Sequence record: MN871447.1
Strand: one strand, 5' to 3'
Length of the DNA stretch: 64,000 bases
Position numbers and translations under genes: made by a program. Position 1 is the first letter of the stretch; every line of letters starts with the position of its first letter. Below are positions 3,580 through 60,546 of the stretch, piece after piece. The notes below the pieces were generated by a model, which saw nothing but the letters and a program-made list of their open reading frames with translations, searched no databases and was not told the origin of the DNA.

Positions 3580-4179
3580 ATGTGGACTTCATTTTTCAAC
3601 AACAAGTTAGTTAGGTGGCTTCTGGTCATTCTCTCTATTTTGCTCTTTATCTACGGTGTATTTAAAGCCGGGGAATACGCACAGAAAAAGATCACTGAAA
3701 CAATCGCCGACGTCACGAACCAAATGACGCAAACCATCCAAAAGAATTTGCAACAGTCGCTTGATGAGCACATGGGCGTGTTACAAAACGAATTGGATAA
3801 TAACTTGTCTTCAATCAATGGTAAATTCGATGAACAACAAAAAGCGATTAAAAATACTCAGTCTAAGCTTGATGGTATTGGTGATGTGTGGTTGCGCGTC
3901 GAAAGAGTACGTACCGACCAAAAACACATCGGTAACGCTCAAGGTACCGGAAGTCAAACTCCCGGAAGTTCGGGAGGAAGTGATGGAACCTATTACGCCA
4001 AACTTCCAGCTGAGAATGTGCAATTTCTTAAAGGGGAAGCCTTTAGAGCAGATCAATGCGCCGTGCGATTAAACGCTGCGCAGCAGGTCATCGTTCAGTA
4101 TAAAGGGGCGTTTGTAAAATACCAGGAACTCGTGGAAGTTTACCTTAACGCCGGCCAACTTGATGGTAAGACAAAATAA
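3580..4179 (+). CDS. Inner-membrane spanin (Rz-like i-spanin)
   Basis: Single N-terminal TM (VRWLLVILSILLFIYGVF), long coiled-coil periplasmic region, Gly/Ser linker, C-terminal Cys; embeds a lipoprotein ORF in another frame. Confidence 0.8.
   Translation: MWTSFFNNKLVRWLLVILSILLFIYGVFKAGEYAQKKITETIADVTNQMTQTIQKNLQQSLDEHMGVLQNELDNNLSSINGKFDEQQKAIKNTQSKLDGIGDVWLRVERVRTDQKHIGNAQGTGSQTPGSSGGSDGTYYAKLPAENVQFLKGEAFRADQCAVRLNAAQQVIVQYKGAFVKYQELVEVYLNAGQLDGKTK
3830..4072 (+). CDS. Outer-membrane spanin lipoprotein (Rz1-like o-spanin), fully embedded in the i-spanin gene
   Basis: From ATG 3830: MNNKKRLKILSLSLMVLVMCG-CASK. Basic n-region, hydrophobic h-region, lipobox-like MCG/C with Cys22; Pro-containing mature part with two more Cys; 80 aa. 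Confidence 0.8.
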   Translation: MNNKKRLKILSLSLMVLVMCGCASKEYVPTKNTSVTLKVPEVKLPEVREEVMEPITPNFQLRMCNFLKGKPLEQINAPCD

Positions 4180-4182
4180 AAT

Positions 4183-4211
4183 AAAGGTAGAGGGTTTGAC
4201 CCTCTACCTTT
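4183..4211. terminator. Bidirectional intrinsic terminator between convergent genes
   Basis: aaaggtagaggg-tttga-ccctctaccttt, 12-bp stem with A/T tracts on both sides. Confidence 0.85.
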
Positions 4212-4217
4212 TATATT

Positions 4218-4814
4218 TTATCGTCTGCTACGTAACGCGGTGATAACGTCTGCTACTACACTGCTGTTGATCTTATCGCCTACCACTGCCGAAAGGATAT
4301 CTCGGCGCTCTCGGTTAATGATGCCCATGTAATACCACGTCACCATCATCGTCGGTAAGATAATGATCCCTGCTAACGTCGCCGAGGGGAGTTCTTTTCT
4401 ATCGATACACACCACGGCCACTACTGAGGTGAAGATCAAAATAGTGAAGGCCAGTACCATTGCGAACATAGCACCAACCAAACGCCGTGACCTGACTTCG
4501 TATTTATCCGGTTTAGCGATCGCACCAATCACTTCTGGATGAATACCGGGTACCGTCTTATCTGTTTGGTCATTAACAGGCTCTTCTTTTCCTTGTTCCG
4601 GTAAAGGTGCGATTTCCATTTCTAACCATATTGTCTTGTTATCGTCATCGGGATGACTGTCCAGGTATTCCCGCAGGTCTTTCACGGTGGCGGTTTCTGG
4701 GTGAATAGCGGGCGCAAAAAGATGCGCGCGATCCGCAAGCGAGATACCATCCTTATCAACGTAATTACCCAGGACGGTATCGTCAGGGAGTGACAAGAGT
4801 TCATTTAATGTCAT
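4218..4814 (-). CDS. Membrane protein with two C-terminal TM helices; holin/antiholin candidate
   Basis: TM1 LVGAMFAMVLAFTILIFTSVVAVVCI, TM2 LPSATLAGIIILPTMMVTWYYMGII; basic C-tail; adjacent to the spanins. Confidence 0.5.
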   Translation of the reverse strand: MTLNELLSLPDDTVLGNYVDKDGISLADRAHLFAPAIHPETATVKDLREYLDSHPDDDNKTIWLEMEIAPLPEQGKEEPVNDQTDKTVPGIHPEVIGAIAKPDKYEVRSRRLVGAMFAMVLAFTILIFTSVVAVVCIDRKELPSATLAGIIILPTMMVTWYYMGIINRERRDILSAVVGDKINSSVVADVITALRSRR

Positions 4815-5431
4815 TGATAGACCTCATCATAACTTGCCATCAGTTGAAGAAAGACCTCGGACAACGGACGGGTGGCATCAATGAGAGCGACCTTTCCGTT
4901 AGCCTCTGGCGCAAGGTCATTCAAAACCGTTAAGTAACGGTCACGGTAGAAATCAAATTGGGTCGCCAATTCTTCTTCGATGACATCTTTTTTGCGGCGC
5001 CCTAACCGAGCAACGTGGGTGGCGTAATCGATATCCAAGAAAAAGATTGAGTGGTGGTGATCGAAGAGTCCTAATCCTTCGTGGAGATTGAAAATCCAAT
5101 CCCATTCTTCTTTCGGGCTATAGGCGAAAGTCGAAGGCCATGAGCGGTCAAGAATAACGGTATGTCCACCCTCCAGAGCAAAGTTAACTTGACTGTCGAA
5201 GATCTCTTTACGTGCCGAGACGAACAACAGAGCACGAGCAGCGGGGGAAGACGGGCGATCTGACGACTGTGTTAATTCGCGGATTTTTTCTGCAGGGACA
5301 TTGCCGCCAGGCTCACGAAACACCACGACAGATTCACCACGTTCTTTCAACGCCTGTCGGAGTAATGAGACCGCTTCTGTTTTCCCTGCGCCATCGAGTC
5401 CTTCAATGATTAATAGTTTTGCTCTTGCCAT
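4811..5431 (-). CDS. tmk: Thymidylate kinase
   Basis: IIEGLDGAGKT P-loop, FREPGG, LLFVSAR, ILDRSWPSTFAY: the canonical TMPK motif series. Confidence 0.93.
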   Translation of the reverse strand: MARAKLLIIEGLDGAGKTEAVSLLRQALKERGESVVVFREPGGNVPAEKIRELTQSSDRPSSPAARALLFVSARKEIFDSQVNFALEGGHTVILDRSWPSTFAYSPKEEWDWIFNLHEGLGLFDHHHSIFFLDIDYATHVARLGRRKKDVIEEELATQFDFYRDRYLTVLNDLAPEANGKVALIDATRPLSEVFLQLMASYDEVYQ

Positions 5432-9771: not shown

Positions 9772-12216
9772 TTATTCGAAAGGCAATAAAACCGACGTCG
9801 GGAAAAACTCATTAAGTAACAGCGGCTCAGTGAACCCCAAGAGTCTATCTGGCATAACTTGCCACAACTGAACACGCGGGATCTTCCTTACCCATATACC
9901 GTCGAGAGTCGTTTCCCCTAAAACAATCTCAGGATCACGTTCGATCTTTTTCACCCAGAGACCGTCCAGATTTCGAACGAGGACTTCCGTTTGAAGCAGG
10001 TCGTCGGCTTCTGGTGGGTAAACCCAAAGACCGGGGAGCGCCAATGTTTTAATGATGTCGTCAAGAGGACGGTAATCGACGTGGTACAGCCACAACCCAT
10101 TGAGTTCGGTGTTCTTCACGTCAATAGTGATATCTTCTGTCAGACTTCCTTTAAAGCGTACCTCGGCAATCGGGATTCGATGAATCGTTTTGATCGCTGT
10201 ATCGCAAAGTAATCCGATACCCCAATCCAGTCGGTAATAGTAGTTAGCGTAGATCTCTTTAACGTTGAGATCAACCGCTTTAAACGGCGGGAGCACCGTA
10301 CTACTTTTTCCTTTCTGTTTTTGGTCAATGACCTCTACACGCGAAGGCAGCTGAACTTTACCGTACCCCTTACTTTCCACTTTACCGTAACGGACCGCCA
10401 GGTTGTCTAAAACAATACCTGGAGCAGCGATCGTTTTGTGGACGTACTGAACGCCGTAAGAAGAAAGTTGAGTCATGATCCCGATCATTGCGCTGTGAAT
10501 ATCCGAGATACTGATTGTCGACCGGAGATCTGAACCTGTCGCAATAGTGAATATACTCAGTGCAAAATCTGACCATTCCTGCGGGGTTGACATGGACAAT
10601 GTCCAGTTCTTTTCTTTAAACCACGTCGCGTATGTTGTCGGTTGATCGACCAGTGTACAAGGTTCGTCACAATAGAATTTCCGACAGAGGACTTCCCACT
10701 CACCACGTTGGTAAAGATCTTCCATTGACGTATACATCATCCGGTGGGCTGACAAGTTCCCTTGTATAGCGACTGCCGTGGAATAAAAGGCTTCCGTAGA
10801 GATGATCGTACTTACTGAGGTCGTCTCTGTCATTGCCACTTGTATCCCGAGTTCTGTCACGTACGTTTTCTGCGTTGCTTTACGCAGCTCTGAGAACGTT
10901 GGACTTGGAATACGTTGCGCGAAGAAAGCGGTCAGTTTAGGAATGTCCGTGAGCGTTATTTCAAACTGCTGCATCACCGCGTAGACCCAAAGTACCAATG
11001 CCTCCTTCACTGACATTGACATCGCTTCCTGCGAAATAGGGTCAGTTAAGATAATATTGGCAGTGTACTTCCCGTGAGAGGCGAGGTAGATCCATTCCGT
11101 TAATAACGTATCGGTCAGCTTCCGCGGCATGGCATCAGACTGGTCGACCATAACCGATTCGAGTACTTTCGTGGGGAGTATGTTGGTGATCGCGTTTTTA
11201 ACCATATCCGGCACGGTAGATTTTTGCGTCTCAAGATAATCGGCATTATCTTTTGCAGAGTCGACTTCATTCTCTAACGCGTCTTCGATCGTGATATACT
11301 GAATACCGCTGACAGATTCAGCCAAGGTATTCTGCGGGATCTTAGCCACGGTACCAGTGCTGTAAATCCCTTCGCCGATACTTGACGTATCTTGTTGTAA
11401 TTCGTACGCGGTGAGCGGGATACGTCGCTCCGTCAGGATATTCGCGATAAGATCAACAAAGGTACTGGTTTTCCCGGCGTGCGCCTCGATGTATTCAATG
11501 TTACGGTACAGATACAGCGCCTGTTTGAGACTCGTGTAGTCTTTGAATTTATTGAGTCGGCCATGCGACCCCAGATAACACCAAAGATGATAACTGTGCA
11601 CTTGGGGCGTTCTTACGTACCGATTTCGGATATTAATAATTTCGCCAGGAAGGTGAGAAAACATTAAACCAAAAAAGGTCGCCGGATATTGCAGTTGTAC
11701 ACGAGCAGGGAGCGGCATGTACCAGCGGTTGGTAAAATTATTAATCCACTCTTGCAGGTCGCTGATTAAATACACCTCTTGTGACTCAACGTGCTCTGAA
11801 TCGTAATAGAGGATTTCCCAACTCTTCGCGCTCAGAATCGTCTCCATGGGAACCGGGTTGAGAATCCCACGTATCAGCGTTTCTTGATTAGGGTAACGGG
11901 AGAGCAGATTCTGATAATAACTTGTCCCGTACGCGTAGGCTTTACGCGTGGCGCGGTGTAATAGTAAGTTATCATATGTGAACTCGATCGTCTCGAGTGT
12001 ATCTAAAGAAACAACCGTCATTGGGGTATCGCTGGCATGGTATTGTCCTGCCAGATTCATATAGTACGCCCATGTGCTAGGTGCACTTGGGTCGACGTTA
12101 TACCCGATAAGTGAAAGGTATTCGTTACGCATCGTGGCGGCGGCAGGAAATTTAATCGTCAATGTCTGTGCCAATGCCATAACGCTATCTAAATATAACT
12201 TCTGCGTGGTATCCAC
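9772..12216 (-). CDS. Baseplate wedge-like virion protein
   Basis: 814-aa ORF divergent from portal (arrangement recalled for phiKZ-like phages); W.YYMNLAGQYH, LYLYRNIEYI...AGK motifs; C-terminal L[ND]GLW repeats. Confidence 0.6.
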   Translation of the reverse strand: MDTTQKLYLDSVMALAQTLTIKFPAAATMRNEYLSLIGYNVDPSAPSTWAYYMNLAGQYHASDTPMTVVSLDTLETIEFTYDNLLLHRATRKAYAYGTSYYQNLLSRYPNQETLIRGILNPVPMETILSAKSWEILYYDSEHVESQEVYLISDLQEWINNFTNRWYMPLPARVQLQYPATFFGLMFSHLPGEIINIRNRYVRTPQVHSYHLWCYLGSHGRLNKFKDYTSLKQALYLYRNIEYIEAHAGKTSTFVDLIANILTERRIPLTAYELQQDTSSIGEGIYSTGTVAKIPQNTLAESVSGIQYITIEDALENEVDSAKDNADYLETQKSTVPDMVKNAITNILPTKVLESVMVDQSDAMPRKLTDTLLTEWIYLASHGKYTANIILTDPISQEAMSMSVKEALVLWVYAVMQQFEITLTDIPKLTAFFAQRIPSPTFSELRKATQKTYVTELGIQVAMTETTSVSTIISTEAFYSTAVAIQGNLSAHRMMYTSMEDLYQRGEWEVLCRKFYCDEPCTLVDQPTTYATWFKEKNWTLSMSTPQEWSDFALSIFTIATGSDLRSTISISDIHSAMIGIMTQLSSYGVQYVHKTIAAPGIVLDNLAVRYGKVESKGYGKVQLPSRVEVIDQKQKGKSSTVLPPFKAVDLNVKEIYANYYYRLDWGIGLLCDTAIKTIHRIPIAEVRFKGSLTEDITIDVKNTELNGLWLYHVDYRPLDDIIKTLALPGLWVYPPEADDLLQTEVLVRNLDGLWVKKIERDPEIVLGETTLDGIWVRKIPRVQLWQVMPDRLLGFTEPLLLNEFFPTSVLLPFE

Positions 12217-12280
12217 CGAGCAGTCTCCTCAATAGAACAATCGATTCCCCTTTTCAGAGTGAGAGAAGGATTCTGAATTT

Positions 12281-15076
12281 ATGAATAGTTACGAAAAGAA
12301 AACGGTGAATCCTACCGGGATCAAAGTTTCCAGTCGTCCACAGGATTGGCTCCAACGCACCCCTTCGGCTACGGCAATTATGTCGAAACTGGTTCAGGAT
12401 GCGGTACATCGTACGACTACACCTGGAAATGGTGTCGATGTTCCCGACCCAACGATTTTCGACCGTCTCGTCAGTCGTCGCGCCAGAAAGAACCTGGACG
12501 CAGAAACAATCATCTCTTTAGCGCCCGACATTAAATTGATTAAACAGATGATTGTTTCCACTACCCTTTCTCCGGTCGATATGACCCAAGGAGAGTTAGG
12601 ATTTAAAACCGAGGCGTCAGAGATCCCGCCAAGCGTCCTCAATCAAGTCACAGAGGTCATACGGGATCATTTTGAGTCATACTACCCCTTACGCGATAAA
12701 CTCCCTGAGATCATCGGAGAGGCGTTATTTGAAACAGGTGCGTGGGTCGGTGTAATTGTCCCGGAAGCTGTTATCGATGACATCATCAACCTTCGCGAAG
12801 TCGGCAGTTATCTGGCCACGGAAAGTTTCAATGAGAAACTGAAAACGCATTTCGTTGACGGAACCTTAAAGTCTGTCGGGATCTTAGGTGACCCAGGAAT
12901 TACCGATCAGGAAATCCGTGATGCGAATAAAGGTAAAAAGAACATTCGCAGTAGTGCACCGGCACCGTCTTTAGAAAGCATGTTCTCCATGCCGGTTATG
13001 AACCCTAATCAGGTTCGTATTAATGACAGTGCCACCATCACCGATAACCTCGGAATTATGGGTTTGAGCCATATCCGTAACCAGATTAATGAAGAGCGTT
13101 TGAGAAACAAATACCGCTACGGACGTAGCGGAGCAGGGATGGAGGCGTACCGGTCAAGAAACGGTCATAACAACGTCTCGACGGTCGCGAGAACGCTTTA
13201 CAACTCACGGTCTGGTCAAACTAGCGTTAACCCTGTTAAAGTCATTCCTGCGGCCTCAGAAGCCAGCAGAAGCAGTATTGGTCATCCGCTGGTCATTAAG
13301 TGTCCCTCAGAATCGGTGATTCCGTGTTACCCGAAAGGCGATGAGCGAAACCACATCGGTTACGTCATTGTCCTGGATGAGCTGGGTAACCCGATCAACT
13401 TAACCGATGAACTGAACCAGGCAGCCACTAATGGTCAGATCGGTACAATGGGTGCTCAGCAACAACTGGACATGACCTCCAGTTTGATCCAGCAAACCCG
13501 CATTGCGCAGAACGGTATCTGTATGGATACCGACAAAATGGCGGCGGAAGAACGTATTCGCGTCTATAACCAGGTCTTAGAGGAAAACATCCTCAACCGT
13601 ATTAAAAACGGTTTGATCGGTCGTAACGTGAAGATGGCCTGGAACGAAGATATCATGCGTATCATGATGTTCCGTCAGTTTGCGAACCAACGTACTAACC
13701 TCGTCTTTGTCCCTGCTGAACAAGTCGCGTATTTCGCTTACGACTACGACAGTAACGGGATGGGGAAATCGTTGCTTGATGACATCAAACAGGTCTCTGC
13801 ACTGCGAGCCATGACCACCTTCGCTAACTTTATGGCGGGCGTGAAGAATGCGGTAGGACGAACCAAAGTAACGATGAACATCGACCCGCGTACACCTGAC
13901 CCCGAGAAAGCTTATGCGATCTTGATTGATGAGTATCAACGAATGACCAGCACCGTTACTCCTACGGATGTCAGTTCTTCGGCGGAAATGTTCCGCGTAC
14001 TCAGAATGATGGGGACGACGATTGAAGTACAGGGTAACCCACGTATCCCGAATACTACTGTGGACATTAATGAGTACCAATCTCAGAAACAGATCATTGA
14101 TGAGAACTTTACCAATGATCTTCGTCGTCAACAGTATATGGGTCTCTTTGTTACACCGGCGATGGTGGACATGACTGACGAGGCAGACTTTGCTATCACC
14201 CGTTGGACGTCTAACCAGCTCTACGCTAAACGTATCATGATGATTCAAGACGACACCTGTAAGCACGGGAAGAAGCTCGTCAGATCATACGTGAACTCGG
14301 ACGGTGTTTTAATCGGGCGTATTCAGAAGATCTTTGCCGAGAACAACGATAAACTCCCTGAAGAATATCGTCTCGATAAAGAAAGTCATATCCCGGAAGA
14401 TTTAAAATACCTCGATGCGATCGACGCTTATTTTGACGCATTCTACCTTGAGTTACCTCGTCCGGAAAATAACCGGATTGAGAAACAAAAAGAAGAATTC
14501 GACAAAGTGAAAGATATGATTGACGACATTGTCGACTGTTATATCTCAAGCGAACTTCTGGGGGCATTTGCACCGGAAGATCAATCTAAGATCGATATGC
14601 TCAGGGCACACATGACAGCGTACCTGAAACGCGACTGGTTACAGAGTCAAGGCTTCGATATGGGCTTTGTGAAAATCCTGTCGCCGGTCACGGAAGAAGA
14701 TCCGTCGCTGGATATGATCAAAGTCTTTACTACCGACATTGTCAATATGCTGCATAACTTTGGCGATTTCAGCTCGGCATTGGCGGCCACCCGTGACGCG
14801 TTACTGAAACGGATGGAAGTAGAGAACCCGAAACAGCATGAGATCCTTACAGCCAATAATGACGCTGGCGGCGGTTGGGACAATGGCAGTTCCGGAAACG
14901 ATTGGGACAACAACGATTCCGGTGGTGGCGACGCCTTTGGCGGTGGCGACTTCGGTTCCTTCGAAGATACCGAGGAAGATCCTTTCGCCACGGACGAGTT
15001 AGAAGGAGGAGAAACTTCCACTGAAGAGGAAGCAGATCCTTTCGCTACACCAGAAGAAACAAACGGACCTGAATAA
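12281..15076 (+). CDS. Portal protein (phiKZ gp129 / SPN3US gp81-like)
   Basis: 931 aa; size, position near the MCP and motifs (ALFETGA, IKCPSESVIP, IGYVIVLDELGNP, YFAYDY...G.GKSLL, acidic tail) match recalled family; [AS]xE maturation sites ATES, SLES, GMEA. Confidence 0.75.
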   Translation: MNSYEKKTVNPTGIKVSSRPQDWLQRTPSATAIMSKLVQDAVHRTTTPGNGVDVPDPTIFDRLVSRRARKNLDAETIISLAPDIKLIKQMIVSTTLSPVDMTQGELGFKTEASEIPPSVLNQVTEVIRDHFESYYPLRDKLPEIIGEALFETGAWVGVIVPEAVIDDIINLREVGSYLATESFNEKLKTHFVDGTLKSVGILGDPGITDQEIRDANKGKKNIRSSAPAPSLESMFSMPVMNPNQVRINDSATITDNLGIMGLSHIRNQINEERLRNKYRYGRSGAGMEAYRSRNGHNNVSTVARTLYNSRSGQTSVNPVKVIPAASEASRSSIGHPLVIKCPSESVIPCYPKGDERNHIGYVIVLDELGNPINLTDELNQAATNGQIGTMGAQQQLDMTSSLIQQTRIAQNGICMDTDKMAAEERIRVYNQVLEENILNRIKNGLIGRNVKMAWNEDIMRIMMFRQFANQRTNLVFVPAEQVAYFAYDYDSNGMGKSLLDDIKQVSALRAMTTFANFMAGVKNAVGRTKVTMNIDPRTPDPEKAYAILIDEYQRMTSTVTPTDVSSSAEMFRVLRMMGTTIEVQGNPRIPNTTVDINEYQSQKQIIDENFTNDLRRQQYMGLFVTPAMVDMTDEADFAITRWTSNQLYAKRIMMIQDDTCKHGKKLVRSYVNSDGVLIGRIQKIFAENNDKLPEEYRLDKESHIPEDLKYLDAIDAYFDAFYLELPRPENNRIEKQKEEFDKVKDMIDDIVDCYISSELLGAFAPEDQSKIDMLRAHMTAYLKRDWLQSQGFDMGFVKILSPVTEEDPSLDMIKVFTTDIVNMLHNFGDFSSALAATRDALLKRMEVENPKQHEILTANNDAGGGWDNGSSGNDWDNNDSGGGDAFGGGDFGSFEDTEEDPFATDELEGGETSTEEEADPFATPEETNGPE

Positions 15077-15136
15077 AAAAAGAGGGCACAAACCCTCTTC
15101 CCTCCCACAGAGAGCGAAAGCTCTCTGTGGGAGGGT
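15077..15136. terminator. Double hairpin, bidirectional terminator between convergent genes
   Basis: aagaggg-cacaaa-ccctctt preceded by an A-run, then ccctcccacagagagc-gaaa-gctctctgtgggaggg (16-bp stem). Confidence 0.85.
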
Positions 15137-54184: not shown

Positions 54185-54262
54185 TATTGAGCCCTTATGT
54201 AAATTTTAATTCACAGTAAGCGTAATTTGAATGAAAATCTTTTTCTAACTGAGGCAAATGAC

Positions 54263-54691
54263 ATGTCTAAAGCACGTAAGAAGAAACCCACTAAAAAGCC
54301 CGGTTACATGAAGTTACACGGGTTTCAATACATCAATGACATTATTCGGAAATCACCGAAGTTACTCTCCGAAGCCGCCACTATAGTAGTGCAGTTCGAC
54401 GCCTTAGATGAAAAAACTCTTTCTTTAGGGGAAATCCTGAAAGGGAAAGAAGAGATCAAGAAGATCGCAGAGAAAGCACCCTCTATTCGAACGACGCTCG
54501 AAGAACTGAAAACCGATTTCGAAACGCTGGTTGCGACACCGGGTAAAAAGGAAGAAGAGCACTTCGCCGATTTGGTTGGACGTGCTGCTGAATTTATTTC
54601 AATGATCACTGAAGACGTGATTGCGCCGATGGCAGAGATCGCGGAGATTGTAGAAAAACGCATTAACCAAAAGGAAACTGTCAATGTCTGA
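54263..54691 (+). CDS. Hypothetical protein with basic N-terminus and coiled coil
   Basis: Better start MSKARKKK at 54263 with GAGG SD. Confidence 0.65.
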   Translation: MSKARKKKPTKKPGYMKLHGFQYINDIIRKSPKLLSEAATIVVQFDALDEKTLSLGEILKGKEEIKKIAEKAPSIRTTLEELKTDFETLVATPGKKEEEHFADLVGRAAEFISMITEDVIAPMAEIAEIVEKRINQKETVNV

Positions 54692-56408
54692 TTTTGAAAA
54701 CGAACAGTCCGGTACTGAAGAAACCCCTACTATCCCTACCACGGGTGTAGGTATTCCGGTCACCAAACACGTTATCACTGACGACGTGTTTGAGGAAGCA
54801 CCGGTAGCAGTCTCCGATGAGACTGTTCAGGAAGACACTGTCACTCCGGCGGAAGAAGAAACCAAACCGGAAGAAGAGACGGAAGAGAAAGAAGAAGAAG
54901 AACATCTTCTCTTTGACGTCGAACCGAATAAAATCGTGATTGATCCGACTCGCCCTATCTTTGTCAGGATCGATCCTAATCAACGCGGCATTGCAGCGTT
55001 AAGTGTATTACCCACGACGCGTGCTGACGCAGAGACGTTTGAAGAAAGTTTGAATAACGTCACTAACGAAGACCTTGAATGGATTCTCTCGACTCGTAAC
55101 GCGACGGATTCAGCGTATCCCGGAAACGGTCTTCTGAAAGCGGCGATCCGTAACGGAGCAAAGTGGAAGACTCAGATCGAGAACCCGGCGACACCGATCC
55201 CGCTTTGTGATTACCGCAGTGCGTATAAGATCTTTGATCAACCGGCTACCAAAATTTCGGGTATTGATGCAATCGATATGTTCACGGCCGGGACTAACTT
55301 GGGTCGTCCTGTCACGGTACCGCTGTGGCACTCTGGTTTCTGGGTGAAACTCCGTGCACCGTCGGCTGCATTCTTAGCGGATATCGACCGTGCCTTAGCC
55401 TTTTCACGTGAAGAGCTCGGACTGGAAGTCTTCGGGGCGATCGGGGCCAATGACCGTTTGATCTTTGACGAGATTCTCGTTGACGCCGCGTTGAAACTCG
55501 TTGTAGAGGCCAACATTCCGATTGCGAAATCGCCGATGGAATTAAAAGAGGTTATTGACTTCTTCGATATCGACAGTCTGATCTGGGGAATGGCATTAGC
55601 AGCATTCCCGGACGGTTGTGAGATCGCCATTCCGTGCCCGAGCTGCCGTGGTGTGAGTCACGTCAAAGCAAACCTTCTCCGTATGCGTTTCGTTGATGAG
55701 TCGCGTTTGACACAAGTTCAAATCCGTCAGATGGCCAAAGGGATTAGCCATAAGACAACGCTGGAAGAATTGAAGAAATACAAAGAAGAGTTCCAAATCC
55801 TCAATACCCAGAAATGGGAATGGAACAAACGTACTTTCACCTTCCGTTCACCAACGATCGAAGAGTACTTAACTTCAGGTCGGGAATATATCACTTCGGT
55901 TTCCCGTGCGTTAACCGAAACGCTGCGTGACGACATTACTGACGACTACCGTCGTGGCCAGAGCATGAAGTCAATCCTTAACACGGAAGAGACAGCGCGG
56001 TTCATGCACTTCATTCGTGAGATTCGTATCCCGAACACCAATGAAAAAGGTAACCCTGATAACTACGGGATTGTTACCGATTCCCATGCTATCCTCGATA
56101 TCATGCGTTATATTTCGGGTGACTTCGAAGCCAGTGACGGTTTAATCGTGGCAATCAATGATTTCATCAATGACGCCATCTGCACTATCATTGGATTCCC
56201 TAACGTCAATTGCCCGGCTTGTGGCAAATTCTATCTCTCGAAGACCGGGGAAGCGACAATTATTGTTCCGTTTAACCCTGCTGTGGGTTTTTTTATCCTT
56301 GCGCAACACAAGATTACGGAAGCGGGGTCGGAGCCACTGACGAATTTAATGACGTTAGGTCTGACCGGTTTGCTATCCAAGGTATCGGCCAGCGAGGCTC
56401 AGGGTTAA
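54684..56408 (+). CDS. T4 gp26-like tail/baseplate assembly chaperone ('G' product)
   Basis: Acidic N-terminus; FFDIDSLIWGM...IPCPSCRG..HVKANL and TFTFRSPTIEEY resemble the gp26 family pattern; second CPACG near the C-terminus. Confidence 0.55.
   Translation: MSDFENEQSGTEETPTIPTTGVGIPVTKHVITDDVFEEAPVAVSDETVQEDTVTPAEEETKPEEETEEKEEEEHLLFDVEPNKIVIDPTRPIFVRIDPNQRGIAALSVLPTTRADAETFEESLNNVTNEDLEWILSTRNATDSAYPGNGLLKAAIRNGAKWKTQIENPATPIPLCDYRSAYKIFDQPATKISGIDAIDMFTAGTNLGRPVTVPLWHSGFWVKLRAPSAAFLADIDRALAFSREELGLEVFGAIGANDRLIFDEILVDAALKLVVEANIPIAKSPMELKEVIDFFDIDSLIWGMALAAFPDGCEIAIPCPSCRGVSHVKANLLRMRFVDESRLTQVQIRQMAKGISHKTTLEELKKYKEEFQILNTQKWEWNKRTFTFRSPTIEEYLTSGREYITSVSRALTETLRDDITDDYRRGQSMKSILNTEETARFMHFIREIRIPNTNEKGNPDNYGIVTDSHAILDIMRYISGDFEASDGLIVAINDFINDAICTIIGFPNVNCPACGKFYLSKTGEATIIVPFNPAVGFFILAQHKITEAGSEPLTNLMTLGLTGLLSKVSASEAQG
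56285..56294 (+). other. Slippery site for programmed -1 ribosomal frameshift (G GGT TTT / T TTT TTT)
   Basis: In-phase X XXY YYZ heptamers; the -1 frame opens just after TAA 56273-56275 and runs without stops into ORF 56426..56812. Confidence 0.75.
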
Positions 56409-56812
56409 TTGAGAAGACAGGCGGATTGGGGAACCTTTCCGCCAAAGTGGCGTTGCGCAGGGCGTACGACCTCGATAACGGGATTTACTCTGAAGCAGTA
56501 GATGCCAAAGTCCCATTCTCTCTTATTGCGATGCATGAACCCGAAGCGGCTGCAAACAAAGGGAAATGGGATGAGTTACTCGAAAAATATCACACGCACC
56601 AGATTAAAGATTACTTCAACTTTACGTTTACAGATTGGGTGAGTCAACCTAATGATATGGTTGAAAAGCAAATCAACACTTCTATTCGGTGGCGTGAACG
56701 AGAAGTCAATGCTAAATCGGAAGAAACGAAAGAGTTAGAGGCACAACTTTCCCAACAGGGTATTACGGTCCCTAACGTTCAAATGATGAAGGAAAAAGGC
56801 CATGGCCAATAA
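56291..56812 (+). CDS. -1-frame extension ('T' part) of the chaperone; track calls it as a TTG-start 128-aa ORF
   Basis: FYPCATQDYGSG...GGLGNLSAKVALRRAYD...; WDELLEKY...DYFNFTFTDWVSQP resembles gpT/gp51-type C-terminal chaperone domains. Confidence 0.7.
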   Translation, partial: FYPCATQDYGSGVGATDEFNDVRSDRFAIQGIGQRGSGLIEKTGGLGNLSAKVALRRAYDLDNGIYSEAVDAKVPFSLIAMHEPEAAANKGKWDELLEKYHTHQIKDYFNFTFTDWVSQPNDMVEKQINTSIRWREREVNAKSEETKELEAQLSQQGITVPNVQMMKEKGHGQ

Positions 56813-57440
56813 GTTTGATAAAATCCAAAAGAAATCTCAGGAACTCTCTGACGCAGCAGATGCGGTAGCAGAAACGGCTGCTTCGGGTGAGAACGACAAC
56901 GCTCCTGTTGCAGCAACCGTGGCAACCGAGTCTGCGGTAGGCGGCAGCGTGAAAGTAAGCACGGTCTCTGAAACTGCGGCTAAGACTTCAGCTGATGTTT
57001 ACGCTGGAGAAAGCGATGCGGTCAAATTGATCATTGCACACCTCGAAGACTACGTTCTGAAAATGGCGCCAGAAAAAGCGCAGACTGAATCTTCACTGAA
57101 AGAAAATCAGAGCGTGCTCTATCGGACACTGGAGCAACTGGTTAATCTGGACAATGTTGCGGATTTTGCGGTCTGCATGAAACGTCTGTTTGCGCTGGTT
57201 CGCAAATACGAAGACGGAGCCTTTGCGCCCAATATGCGTTTTCGTCGCCTGAGCCTTTTAGCGAAGGGTGATAAACAACTCGATAAATACATCGCGTTCG
57301 TCGACATGGTTTGCGCCTTTGCTACTCCCGCAGTGCGTAAAACTATCATTCAACGCTACAACCTGGCACGAGCGGCAGAATTCGCTAAACCGGAATATCG
57401 TGAGCGTCTGATTGAATTCGTGAAGGCGATCAGCGGTTAA
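56802..57440 (+). CDS. Conserved hypothetical protein
   Basis: 212 aa with AAGG SD; Ala/Ser/Thr-rich N-terminal linker and helical C-domain. Confidence 0.7.
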   Translation: MANKFDKIQKKSQELSDAADAVAETAASGENDNAPVAATVATESAVGGSVKVSTVSETAAKTSADVYAGESDAVKLIIAHLEDYVLKMAPEKAQTESSLKENQSVLYRTLEQLVNLDNVADFAVCMKRLFALVRKYEDGAFAPNMRFRRLSLLAKGDKQLDKYIAFVDMVCAFATPAVRKTIIQRYNLARAAEFAKPEYRERLIEFVKAISG

Positions 57441-60522: not shown

Positions 60523-60546
60523 CAAAAAAAAAGAATATAGCGGATA

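Follow-up and report, generated by a model that had tools for sequence, protein, structure and literature searches.

A conserved T-run slip site in nucleus-forming jumbo phages suggests a −1 frameshift joining two separately annotated genes

In the G/GT genes of phage lambda and the E/E′ genes of phage P2, a −1 shift at a simple heptamer late in the gene gives a short tail assembly chaperone and a C-terminally extended one from a single start. The shift site is conserved across a whole phage group without an evident strong stimulatory structure, and P2 uses the heptamer T TTT TTG. In E. coli dnaX, a non-structural gene, a programmed −1 shift yields the tau and gamma isoforms, which share the N-terminal core. 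There the shifted product is the shorter one, and the site A AAA AAG is accompanied by an upstream SD-like element and a downstream hairpin. A homopolymer run at the junction of two frames can also act through transcriptional slippage, as in Thermus dnaX and the transposases of IS elements, where the runs are longer and not phase-locked. T4, in turn, has two paralogues of one domain, gp26 and gp51 (Pfam PF12322, T4_baseplate), one of them with a longer C-terminus.

We examined a window of 64,000 nucleotides from sequence record MN871447.1, which is 100% identical to the 305-kb Klebsiella phage KpLz_1_41 and 77% identical to phiKp24. Since phiKp24 encodes chimallin and PhuZ, and gene order is shared with phiKZ, PhiPA3 and RAY, the genome belongs to the nucleus-forming phiKZ-like phages (Chimalliviridae), as an earlier note had proposed. 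That note had also proposed a programmed −1 frameshift near the end of a 574-codon gene, hereafter gene A, into the next reading frame, hereafter ORF B. The features of the locus are as follows.

54227..54691 (+), upstream gene of the same transcription direction, in the position that gp78 has in phiKZ; its end overlaps the start of A.
54684..56408 (+), gene A, zero-frame product of 574 aa, member of the phiKZ gp77 / PhiPA3 gp074 / RAY gp267 family (phrog_4585, phrog_8054); the first ~150 residues are acidic and modelled with low confidence, and the core is roughly residues 150-555.
55635..55646 (+), first CxxC pair (C318, C321) of a probable four-cysteine zinc site in A, nearly invariant in the family.
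56211..56222 (+), second CxxC pair (C510, C513) of the probable zinc site.
56276..56812 (+), open stretch of the −1 frame, from the codon after TAA (56273-56275) to the stop at 56810-56812; from 56294 it would supply 172 residues to the trans-frame product.
56285..56291 (+), heptamer G GGT TTT, overlapping the next.
56288..56294 (+), slippery heptamer T TTT TTT (zero-frame codons Phe536-Phe537), the family-wide conserved putative shift site.
56288..56408 (+), dual-coding overlap of the two frames.
56426..56812 (+), ORF B as gene callers list it (128 aa, TTG start), family of PHIKZ076.4 / PhiPA3 gp073 / RAY gp266 (phrog_12109).
56802..57440 (+), downstream gene (212 aa, phrog_18957), overlapping the end of the −1 frame by 11 bases.

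Inspection of the sequence confirmed what the note had observed. In the frame of gene A, positions 56283-56297 read GTG GGT TTT TTT ATC, so that both heptamers lie in X XXY YYZ phase, and they are the only two in-phase heptamers in the whole gene. The −1 frame contains no ATG, GTG or TTG between 56276 and 56426, and runs straight into ORF B. A shift at T TTT TTT would join 537 codons of frame 0 to 172 codons of frame −1, giving 709. A single heptamer in a gene of 574 codons is not remarkable, since about 2 are expected by our arithmetic. However, T7/A7 runs are strongly depleted in the window, with 5 overlapping matches at 3 places against 35 ± 8 expected. The other two places look like terminators between genes, so this is the only such run inside a coding sequence in 64 kb.

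To determine whether the slippery codons and the −1 frame are conserved across Chimalliviridae, a test that the note had proposed, we compared 61 non-identical homologous loci, from phiKp24-like phages to phiKZ, PhiPA3, RAY, SPN3US, RP12 and Aphrodite1, down to about 20% identity of A. The full family alignment was too divergent for locus searching, and a sub-alignment was used for this purpose. ORF B was in the −1 frame of A in all 61 loci, and an in-phase N TTT TTY was present at the aligned Phe-Phe in 61/61. Of these, 57 are perfect X XXY YYZ heptamers (T TTT TTT in 40, T TTT TTC in 16, and T TTT TTG, the P2 heptamer, in 1), whereas four lineages have an imperfect P-site pairing, with A or G before TTT TTY. 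The note had listed G GGT TTT beside T TTT TTT, but the conserved site is T TTT TTT/C. G GGT TTT is present only in part of the phiKp24-like clade and in Aphrodite1, and is lost in many lineages, where the preceding base is C or A. The first Phe codon at the site is TTT in all loci, although TTT is rare elsewhere in A in several lineages (1 of 21 Phe codons in Totoro, 0 of 14 in locus L012 of the set, 2 of 18 in RP12, and 2 of 21 in PhiPA3). By our arithmetic the joint chance is about 1e-11 if the 20 lineages were independent, which they are not fully. Homopolymers are error-prone on some sequencing platforms, and if the real genomes had one more T, A-B would be a plain single ORF. This possibility is all but excluded, since the same frame relation recurs in 61 different loci, comprising isolates deposited in GenBank under many separate records and metagenome assemblies, with run lengths of 5, 6, 7 and 8. 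Ten near-identical Klebsiella phage genomes cover the stretch at 97-100% identity, and the two whose run was read directly both have T7.

We then investigated whether the −1 frame is coding from the site onward. It stays open for 139-181 codons after the site in all 61 loci, and its translation matches a profile of B at E 1e-8 to 1e-68 in all but the most distant locus. Conservation of the −1 peptide starts at the site itself, with Phe at position 2 in 61/61, Tyr or His at position 3 in 53/61, and Pro at position 4 in 48/61, and it continues through the stretch before any start codon. Nucleotide identity to phiKp24 peaks at 85-100% over 56285-56476, against about 77% in the rest of the gene. 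In the overlap (56288-56408) substitutions are spread over the third positions of both frames, and along the locus the codon-position pattern of substitutions switches from frame 0 to mixed to frame −1. Suppressed synonymous change of this kind is the signature of dual coding.

The alternative that A and B are two ordinary genes, with B starting at its own weak or non-canonical codon and the T run kept only because A needs Phe-Phe, was assessed from the candidate start codons. Every public annotation read treats them as two genes, and phiKp24 has an ATG where the window has TTG. Nine of 61 loci have a possible start in the −1 frame upstream of the site, and RAY gp266 is annotated that way, so that independent translation of B cannot be excluded everywhere. 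In the other 52 loci, however, no ATG, GTG or TTG precedes the site in that frame. The first one downstream lies anywhere from 9 to 87 codons after it, and gene callers give B 80 to 182 aa. Candidate starts are not conserved in position. This alternative does not explain the 61 of 61 frame relation, the conserved peptide across stretches without any start codon, or the use of TTT against local codon bias, and we regard it as very unlikely. No lineage was found to have fused the two parts in frame: of 1,701 protein clusters of the family, the 150 best all end within about 25 residues of the end of the match.

Programmed transcriptional slippage is the main rival. In this case the phage-encoded multisubunit RNA polymerase, working inside the phage nucleus, would add one U to part of the transcripts, and standard translation would give the same protein products. 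The conserved element is a homopolymer of 7 T's in 38 loci or 8 in 16, and in L012 and SPN3US the run keeps its length of 7 although it starts one codon position earlier. U7 and A7 runs are under-represented in enterobacterial genes in all frames, which has been ascribed in part to transcriptional slippage (PMC4066793), and they are likewise depleted in the window. On the other hand, six loci have only T6 and one has T5, shorter than the runs of known programmed slippage sites. The run always covers the two zero-frame codons TTT TTY, and in the short-run lineages what survives is exactly the A-site/P-site codon pair. A ribosomal site needs this phase, whereas a polymerase slippage site does not, although the conserved phase could also be a by-product of both frames being protein-coding. 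We consider transcriptional slippage possible but the less likely of the two.

A search for stimulatory elements, which are common but not obligatory at ribosomal sites, gave nothing. With methods that do not cover pseudoknots, the RNAalifold consensus was −3.3 kcal/mol with no covariation term, the window's own fold at the site had z −0.74 against shuffled controls, and the mean z over 22 lineages was −0.57, with only 2 below −2. A 4-bp stem three bases after the heptamer is invariant in the window's clade, but it is too weak and too close to count, and its invariance is explained by dual coding. No SD-like element was identified at the usual distance upstream. That no stimulatory RNA structure was found counts in favour of slippage by the polymerase, and against the ribosomal version U UUU UUU is reported to be much less shift-prone than A AAA AAG in E. 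coli (PMC5009743).

On the basis of these comparisons, gene A and 'gene' B are probably one recoded gene. In this model most ribosomes read A in frame 0 and stop at 56406-56408, giving 574 aa, while a fraction slip back one base with two tRNA-Phe on TTT TTT within T TTT TTT and read the −1 frame to 56812, giving about 709 aa. In the long isoform the conserved core of A (probable zinc-binding alpha/beta core, residues ~150-537) would be followed by a linker of about 45 residues and the helical B domain. The analysis establishes the site, the frames, and their conservation in every relative examined. All of this evidence is comparative, and it is by inference that we propose the trans-frame protein itself, a slip on the ribosome, its minority status (U UUU UUU being a modest shifter in E. 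coli and no stimulator having been found), and a need for both isoforms. Recoding of some kind, ribosomal or transcriptional, is very likely, and the ribosomal version is more likely than not. Unlike dnaX, the shifted product here would be the longer one, and neither dnaX stimulator was found.

If the reading is correct, one conserved gene of nucleus-forming jumbo phages is mis-annotated as two. The family was found by tblastn in 212 phage records of the collection searched and forms about 1,700 protein clusters in metagenomes. In all 14 annotated records read, the small downstream "hypothetical protein" would be better read as the C-terminal domain of a longer isoform. It would also add a deeply conserved recoding signal, a U-rich heptamer with no evident stimulator, to a phage group for which we found none described. 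Like the earlier note, which was not aware of any description, we found nothing relevant in literature searches on phiKZ gp77 (PHIKZ077), PhiPA3 gp74, or frameshifting in jumbo or nucleus-forming phages, and we did not identify the family in published core-gene lists. As this phage group separates transcription from translation, the choice between ribosomal and transcriptional slippage is unusually interesting, and it is not excluded, though unlikely, that the extra base is added by the phage's own polymerase inside the phage nucleus. That no lineage has fused or separated the two parts would argue that the ratio of short to long form matters, and would give a handle on a protein of unknown function.

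The note's interpretation was only partly supported, in that the frameshift held up well whereas the reading of a G/GT-type tail chaperone pair did not. Three findings speak against the latter. First, in the window's clade and in phiKZ, PhiPA3, RAY and SPN3US the neighbours are RNA polymerase beta, DNA polymerase and SNF2-type helicase genes, not tail tube or tape measure genes. Second, no tail-assembly-chaperone or gpT family of Pfam or PHROGs matched A or B, and PDB searches by sequence and by fold gave nothing for either. Third, the predicted sizes are 574/709 aa, not roughly 140/280, the proteins being four to five times larger than those of lambda and P2. Two products sharing an N-terminus are predicted here from sequence and conservation alone, and a role in tail assembly is not supported by these data. 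The note's proposal that the extension is a gpT/gp51-like domain found no support, since B matched only its own family. The model of B is poor (pLDDT 53), so its Foldseek matches show only that it resembles its own family.

The note's further suggestion that A is T4 gp26-like is only weakly supported. In a Foldseek search of BFVD, the model of A (mean pLDDT 67) matched predicted structures named 'Baseplate hub assembly protein, T4-like' and a Campylobacter phage base plate hub subunit (E 4.8e-4, 3.9e-3 and 0.024, TM 0.45-0.50 on the target), the best at E 4.8e-4 with TM 0.50. This faint likeness is the only lead to function. CxxC motifs occur in both families, and the two T4 paralogues, one with a longer C-terminus, are a loose parallel to two isoforms. 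However, PF12322, which T4 gp26 and gp51 match at 8.8e-64 and 3.9e-52, matched none of 21 A-family members at E ≤ 1, and A is more than twice as long as either T4 protein. Comparison by hhalign of the A family with T4 gp26, gp51 and small alignments of their relatives aligned only 11-18 columns at 3-38% probability, the aligned parts being a CxxC and an FRxP stretch at 21-38%. The T4-side alignments were shallow (2 and 9 sequences), so this is not a strong negative. It remains conceivable, though unlikely, that the phiKZ gp77 family is a greatly enlarged relative of the hub-assembly proteins, of which Chimalliviridae would make a short and a long form by frameshift where T4 keeps two paralogous genes and lambda or P2 frameshift their tail chaperones. 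This would be a third way to the same two-isoform assembly logic, in a gene sited away from the tail module. A second word-indexed search with an alignment of A found no new proteins, and searching the full −1 frame extension against PHROGs added almost nothing beyond the annotated B, the score rising from 50.0 to 50.5 bits.

To verify the proposed recoding site, we first examined the sequence of the locus and its closest relatives. The source is a Klebsiella jumbo phage of about 300 kb. Positions 54684-57440 are 100% identical to phage KpLz_1_41, 97-99% identical to nine sister isolates, and 77% identical to vB_KpM_FBKp24 (phiKp24) and Centimanus. Since phiKp24 encodes chimallin and PhuZ, the designation "phiKZ-like" in the earlier note is right. 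The features relevant to the site are as follows.

54684-56408, ORF with an ATG start, referred to as gene A
56273-56275, stop codon in the -1 frame
56283-56297, GTG GGT TTT TTT ATC in the frame of A
56426-56812, the listed downstream ORF with a TTG start, referred to as B
56810-56812, stop codon that ends the open -1 frame

The sequence at 56283-56297 gives two overlapping in-phase heptamers, as the earlier note had named, and these are the only in-phase X XXY YYZ heptamers in the gene. The -1 frame is open from the stop at 56273-56275 to that at 56810-56812 and contains B. A shift on the second heptamer would give 537 + 172 = 709 residues. The observation made in the earlier note is therefore confirmed.

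We then asked whether the site is more than a chance occurrence. A heptamer alone is not significant, but three other lines of evidence are. First, runs of seven T or A are strongly avoided in this window, with 5 matches at 3 places against 35 +/- 8 matches expected from shuffles, an about seven-fold depletion of homopolymers of 7 or more. The other two places, at 15075-15081 and 60524-60532, sit at the ends of convergent genes next to GC-rich inverted repeats and look like intrinsic terminators, in line with the terminator annotated at the equivalent place in phiKp24. The run at 56288 is the only one inside a coding sequence. Second, identity to phiKp24, which is about 77% over the gene, rises to 85-100% exactly from the heptamer to about 56476, and is 100% over 56357-56416. 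The third line is the comparison of homologous loci, which had been set beforehand as a test of the proposal.

For this purpose, homologous loci at graded distance were collected from contigs encoding the protein hits of a homology search, from annotated phage records found by tblastn (212 records in all), from IMG/VR contigs, and from the window itself. The annotated records included phiKZ (gp77), PhiPA3 (gp074), RAY (gp267), SPN3US, LucasX, Psa21, Aphrodite1, RP12, RSF1 and phiHQ. After removal of identical copies, 61 loci remained, and each frame was translated and searched on its own. The downstream ORF was in the -1 frame of A in 61 of 61 loci. At the aligned Phe-Phe of A, the zero-frame codons were TTT TTY in 60 loci and TTT TTG in one, and the preceding base was T in 57, A in 2 and G in 2. 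The heptamers were T TTT TTT in 40 loci, T TTT TTC in 16, T TTT TTG in 1, G TTT TTT in 2, A TTT TTT in 1 and A TTT TTC in 1. In contrast, G GGT TTT, the other heptamer named in the earlier note, is not conserved, since within the window's own clade the base before GGT is C or A in five lineages.

The -1 frame stays open for 139-181 codons after the site in every locus, and its translation matched a profile of B at E 1e-8 to 1e-68. The exception was L013, the locus of the most distant relative found (P0014, 696 aa). In this locus (3670-4089), what is annotated as a 409-base intergenic gap after the gene is filled by an open -1 frame of 139 codons, which starts at a T8 run 27 bases before the stop and did not match the B profile. 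In 52 of 61 loci there is no ATG, GTG or TTG in the -1 frame between its upstream stop and the site, and in about 20 loci that stop lies only four codons before the heptamer. The first possible start after the site lies anywhere from 9 to 87 codons downstream. This is why gene callers give B lengths from 80 to 182 aa and leave gaps of 17-219 bases. Public annotations of the downstream ORF disagree widely. RAY gp266 (4101-4649 of the RAY locus, L016) is started 26 codons upstream of the T run and overlaps gp267 by 136 bases, while PHIKZ076.4 (4985-5227 of the phiKZ locus, L014) is started 87 codons after the T run, leaving 219 bases unannotated.

Protein conservation in the -1 frame begins at the site, with Phe at position 1 in 57/61 loci, Phe at position 2 in 61/61, Tyr in 40 and His in 13 at position 3, and Pro in 48 at position 4. 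An alignment showed that it continues through the stretch without start codons. TTT at the first Phe codon is universal, although several lineages strongly prefer TTC elsewhere in the same gene, with TTT/TTC counts of 1/20 in Totoro, 0/14 in the relative L012, 2/19 in PhiPA3, 2/16 in RP12, 2/14 in RSF1 and 2/20 in Aphrodite1. In eight lineages of the window's clade, pairwise differences fall mainly on zero-frame third positions upstream of the site (673/274/222), are fewer and split between the third positions of both frames in the overlap (411/198/316), and fall mainly on -1 frame third positions after the zero-frame stop (131/116/205). No natural fusion was found among the 150 best clusters of the family. 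A full profile search of 1.84 billion representative proteins returned 1,701 clusters of the family, of which all 150 best end within about 25 residues after the end of the match. Together, these results are hard to explain unless the -1 stretch is translated as a continuation of A.

The simplest mechanism is tandem -1 slippage of two tRNA-Phe on U UUU UUY. In favor of a ribosomal event, the phase of TTT TTY is kept while the run length varies, being 5 bases in 1 locus, 6 in 6, 7 in 38 and 8 in 16, and in the short-run lineages the part that survives is the codon pair itself. However, no conserved downstream structure was found, and U UUU UUU is reported as far less shift-prone than A AAA AAG in E. 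coli (PMC5009743). Both argue against a high efficiency, and we therefore expect a minority product, as for lambda G/GT. The main rival is transcriptional slippage on the T run, which would give the same proteins. U7 runs are avoided in enterobacterial genes partly for that reason (PMC4066793), and these phages transcribe with their own multisubunit polymerases. The two mechanisms cannot be separated with sequence alone. The site, the reading frames and their conservation in the loci examined are what the analysis demonstrates, whereas translation across the site, its ribosomal nature and the minority status of the long product are inferred.

In the window's clade, the zero-frame tail after the site is 38 residues long, of constant length and conserved, whereas it is 9-23 residues in other clades. 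The tblastn matches of A to those clades end within about ten residues of the Phe-Phe (query residues 536-537). In the predicted model of A, the Phe-Phe lies in the last helix of the core (H532-547). The -1 reading puts Tyr/His-Pro right after it, so that the two predicted isoforms would differ from that helix onward.

In giving two isoforms from one start, the proposed shift would work like the classical phage -1 frameshifts (lambda G/GT, P2 E/E') and like dnaX. What would be new is the place, which is deeply conserved, whereas the mechanism would be an ordinary one. We found no paper that mentions frameshifting together with Chimalliviridae, phiKZ gp77 or its homologues, including two recent reviews of jumbo phages, in which the terms do not occur, and the large 2016 recoding review (PMC5009743) in the part consulted. 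None of the 14 annotated public records that were read joins the two ORFs.

To find clues to the identity of the protein, we scrutinized the sequence and predicted structure of A. The first ~150 residues (54684-55130) are very acidic with a long Glu-rich run, are modelled with pLDDT below 50, and vary in length among relatives. They are followed by a well-modelled alpha/beta core. Four cysteines in two CxxC pairs, C318/C321 and C510/C513, are nearly invariant. No Pfam family matched A, the PHROGs that it matched have unknown function, and no PDB relative was found by sequence or fold. Against predicted viral structures, A matched its own family strongly. It matched more weakly proteins named "Baseplate hub assembly protein, bacteriophage T4-like" (E 4.8e-4 and 3.9e-3) and a Campylobacter phage base plate hub subunit (E 0.024), with TM about 0.5 on the target. 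This may be the source of the "baseplate hub" label in one public annotation.

Whether A is related to T4 gp26, as the earlier note had suggested, was examined with the T4 genome (NC_000866, accession shown in PMC5384007). T4 gp26 and gp51, which are adjacent and divergently transcribed (10803-12229), both match Pfam PF12322 over its full length (8.8e-64 and 3.9e-52) and are therefore paralogues, with gp51 carrying about 45 extra C-terminal residues. PF12322 does not match A, and profile comparison aligned only an FRxP stretch and a CxxC stretch at 3-38% probability. The gp26 likeness is therefore a lead, not a finding. B is predicted to be helical and is poorly modelled. It resembled only its own family, and nothing links it to gpT or gp51, in contrast to the suggestion that the extension is a gpT/gp51-like domain. 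The interpretation in the earlier note is thus supported only in part, in that the comparative evidence favors a -1 shift in a phiKZ-like phage, but the pair is not shown to belong to the tail-chaperone families.

The gene sits in a conserved block with a virion RNA polymerase beta-type subunit gene, a head-protein gene, and nearby DNA polymerase and helicase genes, and is not next to tail tube or tape measure genes. Genes of phiKZ-like phages are known to be scattered (PMC5105663), so position is weak evidence either way. In two related phages, GIY-YIG / I-TevI-type homing endonuclease genes lie next to the RNA polymerase beta-type gene (L007 47-1228 and L010 1-1212). The gene that follows B in the window (56802-57440, 212 aa, phrog_18957, with a weak match to a "virion structural protein" PHROG) overlaps the end of the -1 ORF by 11 bases, which suggests that the gp78-like gene, A/B and this gene are read as one operon.
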